DNA of 61,384 nucleotides, the filler included, from Platydemus manokwari (Eukaryota), in NCBI GenBank assembly GCA_037951405.1. It is 6 parts of 6 records of this genome, joined end to end, with 100 filler letters (N's around TTAATTAATTAA, not from the genome) between each part and the next. Parts side by side here need not be neighbours in the genome. Positions count along the whole stretch, not along the records: positions 9,933 to 20,199 come from JBBMOY011151660.1; 5 more parts are not named here. One strand, given 5' to 3'. The stretch's first letter is position 1. Each line of letters starts with the position of its first letter. Shown here piece after piece: positions 11,764 through 19,619 of this stretch. The position numbers were made by a program, and so were the translations under genes. The notes under the pieces were generated by a model, which worked only from the letters and a program-made list of their open reading frames with translations, ran no database searches and was not told the origin of the DNA.

Positions 11764-14700
11764 CTACATGGACATTGGAGAGAACGGGGGACTGCCAACA
11801 GTTCCACCAGTGTGCCTTGTTCGTCTGGTGCGATTACGAATTATTTGAAGCATTATAAGTTTTCGTAAACCCATTCTTTCACCAAGAGCCACTATGGCTT
11901 TTTTGTCGTTGGTTAATTTAACATTAAGTATCTCTATATTGGATGTAAACCAACACATTTGGGAACCACTTTCTAAATTCCAAACTCTCATCGATCCATC
12001 CCAACTTCCAGATACAATAATTTCATTGTCCAATGATATGACAGCACTTAGAACCTGAAAATATATTTTTTCGATTAAAATTAATAACAACAACAATTAA
12101 TAATAGTCTCGAGACGCATAAATTTTATTTCATCTCTTATTGAAAGTGATTATTATTAATTAATAATTATAATTATTTAATAATAATATAATTAACAATA
12201 TAATAATATCTTACATTAAAGACCCTGGTTGAATTCATTGAATAATTTATTATTGTTAATCATTAACAAATATTTATATTAATATTAACTTTGATTTTCA
12301 ATTAATCAATATTTTTCAATGTTTATCTTATTTTGTTTCATTTTCATATTTTATTACTATCATATAATTATTTATTCAAACCATATTTACTTACAAACAA
12401 ATTCAATCATTCAAATTCTATGAATTTCATTTCTAAATTTGATTTCTCTATTTGGATATATAGATTGATAAATTTGTTTTGCATTGATATTGTTTTAATT
12501 TTTTAATCAAATTGTTATTTGCAGAAAATATTAAAACTATCTACATAATTCATTGAAAACACGTGTACTCTGAAAAATATTGAAAATGCTTAAAATAGAA
12601 AATATAGAAAATTGCTCATTGCTTGTTGAAACAATGATTTGATTTTTTAATATCACAAATCAAACATCATAATTTCAGGTTTTTAATTTTGTCAATTTTA
12701 ATTTATTTTAAATTAGCTAGGTAAAAGAAAATAATCAATTTTAAATACAGGATGGTTTTTGAAATGGTCCTGATGATAATTGATTATCATCATTATTAAC
12801 TATCAAACTTATCCGCATTATTAGTCATAGCATAAACAGTAATGGTGATGAACTTTGAAATTATGTCAAAATATTGAATATCTTATGTAATTATTGACAA
12901 AATCATTTATATATATACATCATCTGCATGGCCTTCAAGACTGTGCATCAATCTCTCGTCAGCCATTGTGTAGACATTTACTGTTTGGTCTGCGCTGCCT
13001 GTCACTAAATATTCTCCATTCTTTGAAATAGCAATGCAATTGATTGCATCCTTATGGGGAGTCAATTTTGTTTGTGTATTACCTTCCAATGTAGCATGAA
13101 TTAATATTTGACGAACTGGTTTTGCAGTACGTAGATTCCAGATTATAAGTTCACCTTTTTTGGTTCCTAAATTTGTATCAAATTTTATCCATATATTTAA
13201 ATATTTTTTTAATTTACCAGTTATTGCCTCATCAGTACCAATAATTTCAGTAGCAACCACTTTAGCGTTAAATGTAGCCAATAATGGTTGAACTATCACT
13301 CCATTAGGATAGGAGGCCATGAGATCAAATACCATGTAATGTGCTTGATCATCAACTCCAGTGAAACCAGCAACAACCATTCTATCATTATGGGAAATTT
13401 TGAGAAACGTAATACCCTCGTGATTCATGAAATCTGGTGGTTGATAATAAATTTCTTTTACCGGTTGATTGGCTTGTAAGTCCCAACATACTATTGACAT
13501 ACCACCATCATGGGATTCGCGATTGATGATCATATGATCAGAAGAATTAGTGATACATGATGCTGAACACATTATATCTAATGGCATGGCAATTTGTGCA
13601 CCAGTTACAAAATCCCACATCTAATAAAAATCAAATCAACACCGGCATTAATATTATTTTTTAAATAAATTAGAATTAAACATAGAATTAAAATTAACTT
13701 TCAAATTAAGGCCAAATTAAATTTAGAAAAAGACATTGTTGGATTATGCTCTATAACAAAATGAGGAAGTGGATTAACAAAAAAGAACTATTCCATAATT
13801 TACAGAAGGATATAAGTTCAACAAAAGAAAGCAATCTTTCATATAAGTTTTCTTGACATTGATGAAGCTTTTCCATCTGGAGCATCAAAGCTATCTTTGG
13901 GGATTTGAAAAGATTGTGTGCATCTGAGGAAGTCAAAACAATAATATACAGAAAATAGAGTAATAGTAATAACTCCTTAAGAATCCAGTAAATATGTAGG
14001 GATGTCTCTTATTAATGCTATTATTTAACATTGTAAATAATCCACTGATAATTAAAATGGATCTTTGTCCAACTGGAGAATTAATGCTGGAAAACTACAA
14101 AATTTGATGTCTAGCATATATGCATGATATTGCAGTTGTCGCTAAAGAATGGTGTTCAGGAACAAGTAGACAGTGCATGCATATTAGTGGAATAATTAGG
14201 ACTTATGCTCAAGCTATCCGCATCTCCTAATCTATTGAAAAAAAGTATGCACAAAAGTTTAAGATGAACAGAAAGACTATAGGAATAGAAAATTGAATAC
14301 TGAGAGATAACATTTCGCTAAATTTTCACAGTTCAGTTGAAAATCTATTCTGCGATCTAATAGACAACAAAAGATTTGCAAAAAGTTATCCTCCTACCTT
14401 GGTAAAAATCAAATGCTTACAAATGCCTCATTTATAGAAAGGTAGATTTCTTTGTCAGAAAATATACCGAATTTATGTCTCTAAATTTCTCTCAAATCAA
14501 TCATATTCAACTTTGAACAAATGATATGCGAAATAAAGAAGATCCATTGTACGTAAATTTGTGTTCCCACAAATAGGGATGATAAAATTAAAGAAACAGT
14601 TTTAGTATCTTAAAAAACAAACCACCAAAGATTCAAGAAAAGGCATTAAATTGCCTAAATTCTCATATTAAAGGAACAAAAAGAAATAGAAATTGATGTG

Positions 14701-17700: not shown

Positions 17701-19619
17701 TTCTCTTGTGTACTAGACTACCATCTTTACCAGTTAGATCTTATGAATTATCAATGTCAATTAATAATGAACGAAAATTAAATATTTCTAACCTGATAAA
17801 TTAAAAGATACCGTTTTTCGTCCATTTATGAAAAATACAATATTATTTCTATCTCTTTCGAATCTGATAAGATAAGGATTTCCACTATCTAAACGTTGAC
17901 CTTCAGAAATGAGTTGCAACATATTTCTGTCATCTCGTAAATACAATTGACCTTGAATCTAATAAGTGAGACAATAATGATTTACTTTAAATAAGTACAA
18001 TGATTTACCATTTGAATTTCATAATATCTCCCACCTTCAAGTTCAAATCTGACGACTGGATTATCTGGATAATTTTTGGTTTGCATCAAAAATTTCATTT
18101 CGTCTTTATGTGTTGGTAATGAAGGTATTATATTATAAATCAAATAGCCTCCATAACTGTATTCTTTAGGAAATATTCCATAGGTCTCTAAATAAGACAA
18201 TTATTACGATCCCTTGTAAAAATTGGAACGATAATTATAAAATTAATAAAATATTATTAATATTATTATAATTCAGATTTAAATATAATTATCTTATAAC
18301 TTACTTTCATTACATTTGAATCCAAAATACCCGGTATGTTCACATTGACAATAAGGAAGTGAATCGATAATAATACAGATTCCATTATTATGGCAAAAAT
18401 TGACGGGACATGATACAGGTTTATTAATAATAGTTGGTATTACAACAATTTTCACTTCACCTTTCCGACTGCCACGTCCATCTTTGATATGTTCAATATA
18501 ATATTTACCGTTCCAATTAAATCCTACAAGTTTCGTTTAGTTATTATGCTTGTGATTCAAAGATTTTTCTTTACCTCCAATTCCTCCTTTAAAAACATCA
18601 GTTTCTCGATGATTAGCACCAATAATGATTTCATTATACCAGACACCGTTGGAATCCCTATCTGTCATTCCTGGAACAATACGGGATGATCGAATATAAC
18701 ATATACATCAAATTATTACCATAAAATGGGATGTTGACTGTCTCCCTTTGGGGACCTAATAAGTTCACCAAAACATCTCCTCTTTTCTCAACATTGACAA
18801 TGTAATATTGGCCATCATTTACAACACTTTGCATTCGGTATATTTGTCCATTCACATCAATAACCGGTTTTCCGTTTTCCTGTAGATCATATGTAAAAAT
18901 CTATCAACATTATCAGATATATTCACACCATTTTTAATGACCAATATTTGCCATCAACAGTTTTGAATGTATATATTGTTCCAGTTTTCGCGTACGTTTG
19001 AAATCCAACGGTGATCGAATCATCTGTTGATTTCACCGCAGGAACCAAAGGATATACCAAATATCCATATTTATCATGTTCGTTTAATATTCCAATTACA
19101 TCTGTTCAAAAATAAATATAAATATATAAAATGATAATATTTCATCTTCCAGAAACAAAATTCAATTTTATAAAATATTGTCAATTAAGTTGAGTTTTAT
19201 TTTATTTTAAAAAATAATTATTTCTAATGAGTGTTGATTATTATAATTTATTATAATAATAAATCATACTATTTCCACAATTTTCTCCAGTATATCCAGT
19301 TCGCGAACAATCACATTTAAATTGATTATTGATTACAGAACATAAACCATTATTCAAACAGAAATTAGGTGGACATTCCTTGATATTCTGACACTGACTT
19401 CCTCGAAAACCTTCAAGACATTCGCAACTGTATTGTCCATTTTTCACCATACATGTACCACCATTTTGACAATAGCCCATGGGACATTTCTTTGGAATAT
19501 TACATCGATCCCCTTCATAATCCGTATTTCCACAATGACAAGTTGGATTTCCTCCTACCATTTGACAGATTCCTCCATATAAACAATAACCACTCGGACA
19601 TGTTTTTCGGATTTGACAT
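11764..19619 (-). CDS. Single-pass membrane protein EGFx3-LamG-EGF-LamG-TM-WD40 repeats (5'-incomplete, >=1179 aa, 18 exons)
   Basis: Exons on the minus strand: 19619-19270, 19101-18929, 18879-18720, 18670-18575, 18523-18305, 18187-18009, 17958-17793, 17739-17647, 16823-16614, 16568-16224, 16173-16127, 16080-16048, 15940-15747, 15696-15510, 15457-15311, 13620-13218, 13166-12919, 12054-11764. Every junction is GT-AG and phase-compatible, with no internal stop. EGF cysteine patterns; neurexin-like LamG motifs (STDDSITVGFQT, VNDGQYYIVNVEKRG, IIIGA..FKGGIGGFNWNG); TM LAGGLFLAGLLLFSALLWA; WD40 motifs (ATGSANSPPQIWD, HKDAINCIAIS..LVTGSADQTVNVY, LEGHADDVLS..IVSGSWDGSMRVWN). Confidence 0.88.
17095..17450. 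repeat. Degenerate (ATT)n-based minisatellite in an intron
   Basis: Repeated units such as TTATTATGGTATTATT/ATCATTATT inside intron 17646-16824; ORFs 17054-17242 and 17058-17297 are low-complexity artefacts. Confidence 0.85.

Follow-up and report, generated by a model that had tools for sequence, protein, structure and literature searches.

The closest described system to the gene considered here is PHRED-1 (Pharynx regeneration defective-1) of the planarian Schmidtea mediterranea, reported by Adler and Sanchez Alvarado in 2017 (bioRxiv 10.1101/131789). According to that preprint, a planarian cDNA clone encodes a LamG domain, an EGF domain, a transmembrane region as well as three WD40 domains recognised by SMART, and 5′ rapid amplification of cDNA ends (5′RACE) gave an 8-kb transcript for a protein of 2536 residues, with a signal peptide, 6 LamG domains, 9 EGF repeats, a transmembrane helix and WD40. 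An antibody was raised for a Western blot comparing control animals with animals treated by RNA interference (RNAi), the predicted size being 298 kDa. Expression lies in muscle (in situ hybridisation is among the methods); RNAi of the gene gives thickened, disorganised regenerating muscle fibres and, secondarily, defective regeneration of pharynx and gut. The preprint also states that the combination of LamG, EGF, transmembrane helix and WD40 is restricted to lophotrochozoans, and name homologues in Schistosoma, Lottia, Octopus, Capitella, Clonorchis, Echinococcus, Taenia, Hymenolepis and Opisthorchis (10.1101/131789). Here we analyse a gene of this architecture in the flatworm Platydemus manokwari. 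The DNA under study, hereafter the window, is a stretch of 61,384 nucleotides from assembly GCA_037951405.1, made of six joined pieces; the gene lies on the minus strand, from 19619 to 11764, in the piece at 9933-20199 (JBBMOY011151660.1), which is AT-rich (GC about 28%). We conclude with high confidence that the window encodes the C-terminal 1179 residues, out of roughly 2500-3000, of a PHRED-1 orthologue, and holds the 3′ half of its gene.

The gene model was rebuilt independently from stop-free segments and splice signals. It comprises 18 exons, all introns being of the GT..AG type and 17 phases out of 17 in register, and the spliced frame of 1179 residues runs to its first stop, a TAG at 11766-11764. 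Introns measure 45-53 nt in 11 cases out of 17, and 107, 117, 168, 823, 864 and 1690 nt in the remaining six. Those immediately downstream of the transmembrane exon are short (50 nt between exons 10 and 11, then 46, 107, 50 and 52 nt up to exon 15). GC content is 37.6% in exons versus 22.8% in introns. The encoded domains follow each other in the order three EGF repeats, LamG, EGF, LamG, a Gly/Pro-rich stalk, a transmembrane helix, a Cys-rich juxtamembrane motif, a linker of about 190 residues, a WD40 propeller and a short tail. At its 5′ end the model is open: the start of exon 1 (19619) is an acceptor site, and a tblastn search of positions 19680-20199 with orthologues matched no additional upstream exon. 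The edge of the piece therefore truncates the gene. The original prediction, made from the DNA alone, had proposed 18 exons joined with matching phases into one stop-free frame of at least 1179 residues, and the rebuilt model confirms this down to the four junctions it had singled out (16224/16173, 16048/15940, 15747/15696 and 15311/13620), which are identical. It had also read the locus as an EGF/LamG ectodomain connected by one transmembrane helix to a cytoplasmic WD40 region, and had argued that the ordinary short introns after the transmembrane exon (46-107 nt) speak for a single gene; splice model, hydropathy and the alignments below bear out both statements.

Protein comparisons treat the two halves of the model as one unit. 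With blastp, residues 1-1176 were covered by a single high-scoring segment pair (HSP) with an Anoplocephala protein (P0228, 41% identity), and comparable single HSPs were obtained with proteins of Schistosoma spindalis (P0156, 41%), Calicophoron (P0154, 40%) and Macrostomum (P0160, 31%), and with a contig-derived protein (P0064, 41%). The E-value against orthologues was 0 across about 1200 aligned residues, a correspondence far outside what chance would give. The single-HSP alignment passes uninterrupted through the join of transmembrane helix, linker and WD40 region, and the matched flatworm proteins, 2600-3000 residues long, share the same architecture. In addition, two nucleotide sequences hold both halves in one uninterrupted open reading frame (ORF). 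The first (L001, 3448 nt) encodes the 874-residue P0064, organised as LamG, EGF, LamG, transmembrane helix and WD40; the second (L002, 5006 nt) has an ORF of 1566 residues with ectodomain, transmembrane helix and WD40. Because the equivalent stretch of the window contains 13 introns, both are most simply read as spliced transcripts. L001 is an environmental contig (JGI sample 3300073458) whose ORF lies at 103-2727, followed by about 720 nt of 3′ untranslated sequence; the sample is a metagenome or metatranscriptome, and the contig apparently represents a transcript of a flatworm-like animal. The source of L002 is, by the protein searches described below, a bivalve-like organism.

The join itself falls in the cytoplasmic linker, which supplies the strongest evidence for a single gene. 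When the linkers of 12 family members were aligned with MAFFT, most of the region proved variable, yet three islands were conserved. Island 1 (SAWxR-like, 16281-16261) stands at the end of exon 10, island 2 (KEKxxLL..NG-like) is encoded by micro-exons 11 and 12 together, and island 3, LDxTDR(F/Y), spans the junction of exons 13 and 14. Left unspliced, exon 10 meets an in-frame TAG (16219-16217) within 2 codons of its donor at 16224, so that island 2 is in frame only if this donor is used.

The same TAG could be taken as the end of a neurexin-like gene, followed by a second, WD40 gene starting at the ATG of exon 12 (16068-16066), the two perhaps forming an operon with trans-splicing at the acceptor at 16081. 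The in-frame ATG does stand in a good context (G at −3 and +4), the annotation of Echinococcus granulosus contains a 492-residue ‘WD repeat-containing protein’ standing alone (P0226), and no RNA run was found for the locus. We nevertheless consider two adjacent genes very unlikely, since exons 11 and 12 encode a conserved island which, in the uninterrupted ORFs of relatives, lies between the transmembrane helix and the propeller. Five relatives align across the join in one HSP, a single ORF encodes both halves in the intron-free L001 and in L002 likewise, the planarian cDNA clone and 5′RACE correspond to one transcript, and the introns at the join are of the modal size, 46-50 nt. As for the stand-alone Echinococcus protein, a fused model exists in the cestodes Anoplocephala, Mesocestoides and Spirometra, and P0226 is most simply a split annotation. 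At the level of the gene model, then, phases, single HSP and linker islands place the WD40 region on the same polypeptide, C-terminal to the transmembrane helix.

Alternative isoforms beside a main fused product would be compatible with this single gene: a receptor with a short tail, if the intron between exons 10 and 11 is retained, or a soluble WD40-only protein started at the exon 12 ATG. The stop directly after the exon 10 donor and the in-frame ATG would suit such products, and stand-alone WD40 models are present in some public annotations. Such features, however, occur by chance in AT-rich introns, and the planarian work describes a single transcript, of 8 kb, and a protein of predicted size 298 kDa examined by Western blot. 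We therefore regard these isoforms as improbable.

Because the window consists of joined pieces and the edge of one of them cuts the gene short, the fusion might also be an assembly chimera, or the gene a decaying pseudogene. A contig of 4781 nt, obtained from a single DNA run, spans 12398-16700 including the introns, with zero differences, which confirms the genomic contiguity of the region though not its splicing. The truncation is that of the piece edge only, and the frame is intact across the 18 exons, with conserved motifs throughout. Chimera or pseudogene thus appears extremely improbable.

Several points weigh against the conclusion of a fused PHRED-1 orthologue. The search of sequencing runs for the locus returned one run only, of DNA, with no exon joints in its contigs, and no RNA run; the fusion is known here from the gene model rather than from observed junctions. 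Both the signal peptide and the initial LamG domains fall outside the piece. Orthology to the Schmidtea protein (dd_Smed_v6_4789_0_1) rests on the homologue list of the PHRED-1 paper and on architecture. With up to 3 mismatches allowed, three phred-1 quantitative PCR primers did not match the window, as expected if the species differs or if the primers lie in the missing 5′ half.

The distribution of the family was followed by protein searches. An exhaustive search with the 237-residue WD40 exon returned mostly multi-repeat WD40 proteins, and 4 matches over the full query. Among the latter were the 874-residue P0064 and a Dicrocoelium protein of 2542 residues (P0012) with five LamG stretches, many EGF repeats, a transmembrane helix and a C-terminal WD40 region. 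Pfam LamG, EGF and WD40 were found together in P0012, in P0156, P0228 and P0160, and in the bivalve-type P0235. A word-index protein search recovered the architecture in the trematodes Paragonimus, Calicophoron, Clonorchis (as ‘Neurexin-3, variant 2’), Schistosoma and Heterobilharzia, in the cestodes Spirometra, Mesocestoides and Anoplocephala, and in the free-living flatworm Macrostomum. A third protein search extended the family to bivalves (Sinanodonta, Mya, Pecten, Mizuhopecten, Argopecten), gastropods (Aplysia, Candidula), the annelid Dimorphilus and the bryozoan Watersipora, entries from molluscs, annelid and bryozoan being mostly auto-named ‘neurexin-1(-like)’. In a tree of the cytoplasmic domain, the window protein falls among the flatworm sequences, outside the cestode clade and the trematode clade, at an unresolved fork with the 874-residue ORF and Macrostomum. 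It shares with cestodes and trematodes an ‘ATLEG..’ insertion that the 874-residue ORF and Macrostomum do not have. The original prediction had guessed at a lophotrochozoan or flatworm class of receptors, and the guess agrees with a family found in trematodes, cestodes, Macrostomum, molluscs, an annelid and a bryozoan. Its structural reading stood; its claim of a little-described new class did not, as the architecture matches that of the PHRED-1 family characterised in 2017, an outcome that the prediction had itself named as refuting. Judged by the predicted protein, the window gene is an ordinary orthologue of that family.

The features of the gene are collected in Table 1. Pfam was run on single exons and on orthologous proteins or segments, as proxies for the spliced protein. 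The EGF repeats of exon 1 correspond to the final part of a long EGF array present in the orthologues, and exon 5 gave the other EGF signal. Single exons gave a weak LamG signal (E 0.09). In P0156, P0228 and P0160, the segments collinear with both LamG regions of the window passed the Pfam LamG threshold, in two stretches each, in line with an ectodomain of EGF and LamG modules. A Kyte-Doolittle hydropathy scan, by which the transmembrane helix was called, gave one peak between ectodomain and WD40 (residues 572-601 of the model), with likewise one matching peak in P0012, P0064, P0160 and P0235. Just downstream of the helix stands a Cys cluster, W-A-C-W-R-C-K-P-G-C-C-P-C-C (CWRCKPGCCPCC), a probable palmitoylation site. 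In the linker alignment, the motif W-A-x-W-R/Q-C-K-P-G is kept from flatworms to the bivalve-type sequence, and flatworms extend it as CC-x-CC. The motif is not mentioned in the portions of the PHRED-1 description available to us.

Table 1. Features of the PHRED-1-like gene of the window, from the 5′ to the 3′ end (window coordinates)
Feature	Position	Strand	Exons and introns	Evidence
Three EGF repeats	19270..19619	-	Exon 1	Pfam EGF, E 4e-14, 3 stretches; collinear with Dicrocoelium P0012 residues 1562-1737
Penultimate LamG/LNS domain	18432..19101	-	Exons 2-5 (first part): 19101-18929, 18879-18720, 18670-18575, 18523-about 18432	Splice model; single-HSP alignment; orthologue segments pass Pfam Laminin_G_2
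EGF repeat between both LamG domains	18305..18431	-	Rest of exon 5	Pfam EGF_2 and EGF, E 5e-4 and 5e-3, slightly under cut-offs; six-Cys pattern
Last, membrane-proximal LamG/LNS domain	16726..18187	-	Exons 6-9: 18187-18009, 17958-17793, 17739-17647, 16823-about 16726; 823-nt AT-rich intron 17646-16824	Weak Laminin_G_2 match on exon 7; orthologue segments pass LamG
Pro/Gly-rich extracellular stalk	16480..16725	-	End of exon 9 and start of exon 10	Model sequence; comparable Gly-rich stalk before the transmembrane helix in orthologues
Single transmembrane helix (16479-16417) into juxtamembrane Cys cluster (16422-16387)	16387..16479	-		Kyte-Doolittle scan; motif conservation
Cytoplasmic linker	15600..16386	-	End of exon 10 (to 16224), micro-exon 11 (16173-16127), micro-exon 12 (16080-16048), exon 13 (15940-15747), start of exon 14 (15696-)	MAFFT alignment of linkers, 12 family members; splice sites and phases
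WD40 beta-propeller	11839..15599	-	Exons 14 (to 15510), 15 (15457-15311), 16 (13620-13218), 17 (13166-12919), 18 (12054-); introns 52, 1690, 51, 864 nt	Pfam WD40; gap-free junction alignment; AlphaFold2 of orthologue; Foldseek
C-terminal tail: basic RNRTRRTR stretch, Ser/Pro-rich end, TAG 11766-11764	11764..11838	-		Model; tail type conserved across orthologues

The cytoplasmic region amounts to about 580 residues including the propeller, and ends in ...SPMSM. Pfam located WD40 repeats in exons 16-18, and the junctions between exons 14 and 15, 15 and 16, 16 and 17, and 17 and 18 all sit in conserved, gap-free columns of an alignment with 12 relatives, where the window exons are 47-74% identical to P0064, its first row. 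The WD40 region (model residues 781-1178) is strongly conserved, with 52-54% identity to trematode and cestode orthologues and motifs in common as far as the propeller's end. At the sequence level, canonical repeats are limited to the last two, and these match generic WD40 proteins.

For structure prediction, the cytoplasmic domain of the 874-residue relative (P0064, residues 466-874; 58% identical to that of the window in the tree alignment) was submitted to AlphaFold2 with a 17-row alignment. The model was all-beta, with about 32 strands, a predicted local distance difference test score (pLDDT) of 86 and a predicted template modelling score (pTM) of 0.83. The best Foldseek matches in the PDB were eight-bladed propellers (ODA16, the designed Tako8, Notchless/Rsa4 and Fbw7, TM-scores 0.60-0.67), seven-bladed ones scoring about 0.5. 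Fold and matches together indicate that the whole conserved region of about 375 residues forms one closed propeller, and the cytoplasmic domain is thus probably a complete propeller with eight blades. Both Foldseek and a profile search of PDB sequences returned generic WD40 relatives only, and no specific origin of the propeller emerged from them.

These features suggest how such a receptor might work. By analogy with the LNS domains of neurexins, its LamG and EGF modules would bind ligands of the matrix or of the cell surface. The transmembrane helix would anchor the protein, probably aided by palmitoylation of the adjacent Cys cluster, and the flexible linker would keep the propeller near the membrane, where it could recruit cytoplasmic partners directly. 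The propeller may in this way replace the PDZ-binding tail and separate scaffold of canonical neurexins. A bolder proposal, which we think unlikely, is that an eight-bladed propeller, tethered to the membrane through a three-island linker and a palmitoylated Cys cluster, could act as a substrate receptor or signalling hub, as Fbw7 or Notchless would suggest, instead of a passive scaffold, possibly with a soluble WD40-only or a short-tailed isoform beside it.

Some features of the surrounding DNA deserve mention. Intron 15 (13621-15310, 1690 nt), by far the longest, sits within the first blades of the propeller; tblastn revealed no exon in it, and orthologues carry no extra residues at that junction. 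Intron 8 (16824-17646, 823 nt) consists of very AT-rich, low-complexity DNA with runs of the ATAATAATA type, and an (ATT)n microsatellite occupies the piece edge (20100-20199). These AT-rich stretches give spurious plus-strand ORFs rich in I, L and Y, for instance at 17054-17297. Beyond the 3′ end of the gene, two ORF segments on the plus strand, 10509-10889 and 10998-11198, correspond to profile positions 53-152 and 228-263 of the Pfam protein kinase domain. They belong to a neighbouring Ser/Thr kinase gene, which converges tail-to-tail with the PHRED-1-like gene, about 570 nt separating the stop codons.

The discovery value of the locus is small, the architecture having been published in 2017 and predicted proteins of this kind being present in dozens of flatworm, mollusc, annelid and bryozoan genomes. 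Its practical value is a clean model, exon by exon, of the gene's 3′ half in a flatworm that has been little sequenced. In public annotations the gene is frequently split or misnamed, as ‘neurexin-1/3’, ‘Neurogenic locus notch-like’, ‘WD repeat-containing protein’ or ‘WDR5A’. Models of this sort include P0226, P0227, P0200, P0155 and P0153: Echinococcus granulosus has, beside its stand-alone ‘WD repeat-containing protein’, a fragment called ‘WDR5A’, the Schistosoma japonicum entry lacks the WD40 end and is called ‘Neurogenic locus notch-like protein, partial’, and family entries of Clonorchis and Paragonimus are named ‘Neurexin-3’ and ‘neurexin’. To the description of the family the analysis adds the conserved juxtamembrane Cys cluster, the three conserved linker islands and a complete, probably eight-bladed predicted propeller, which is more than the ‘three WD40 domains’ given by SMART in the PHRED-1 paper.

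Among known systems, one comparison is with NWD1, NWD2 and other NACHT-WD40 (STAND) proteins, of which the original prediction had been reminded. They too have canonical WD40 repeats, and the last two repeats of the window protein match these well. The window protein, however, has a single propeller and carries no NACHT or other NTPase domain, no Pfam NACHT match being found in the window exons or in full-length orthologues. The Pfam profile Beta-prop_NWD2_C scored under its cut-off and under several unrelated propeller profiles, and was not among the best ones. As all the best propeller profiles stayed under their cut-offs, the WD40 similarity is generic, and a specific link to NWD or NACHT proteins was rejected as unsupported.

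In Crumbs and the Caspr/contactin-associated receptors the tail is short, carries FERM- or PDZ-binding motifs and lacks a WD40 domain. The window protein resembles them in its mixed EGF and LamG ectodomain and its type I topology, and differs from them by its WD40 domain. A canonical alpha-neurexin has six LNS/LamG domains and three EGF repeats, a transmembrane helix and a tail of about 55 residues with a C-terminal PDZ-binding motif. Here the likeness lies in the LamG-EGF-LamG cassette beside a glycine/proline-rich stalk and a single transmembrane helix. In contrast, a short tail with a PDZ-binding motif was not found in the window protein, whose cytoplasmic part of about 580 residues holds a full propeller; a Cys cluster follows its transmembrane helix, and its orthologues have a long tandem EGF array upstream.

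It is PHRED-1 that the window protein resembles most. It differs in that the window shows the C-terminal 1179 residues only, in a species other than the model planarian, and that it is known here from gene sequence. Both have LamG and EGF outside, one transmembrane helix and WD40 inside, on a single polypeptide with a strongly conserved C-terminal WD40 region, and the window protein is collinear with Schistosoma, Clonorchis and cestode proteins from genera listed as PHRED-1 homologues.

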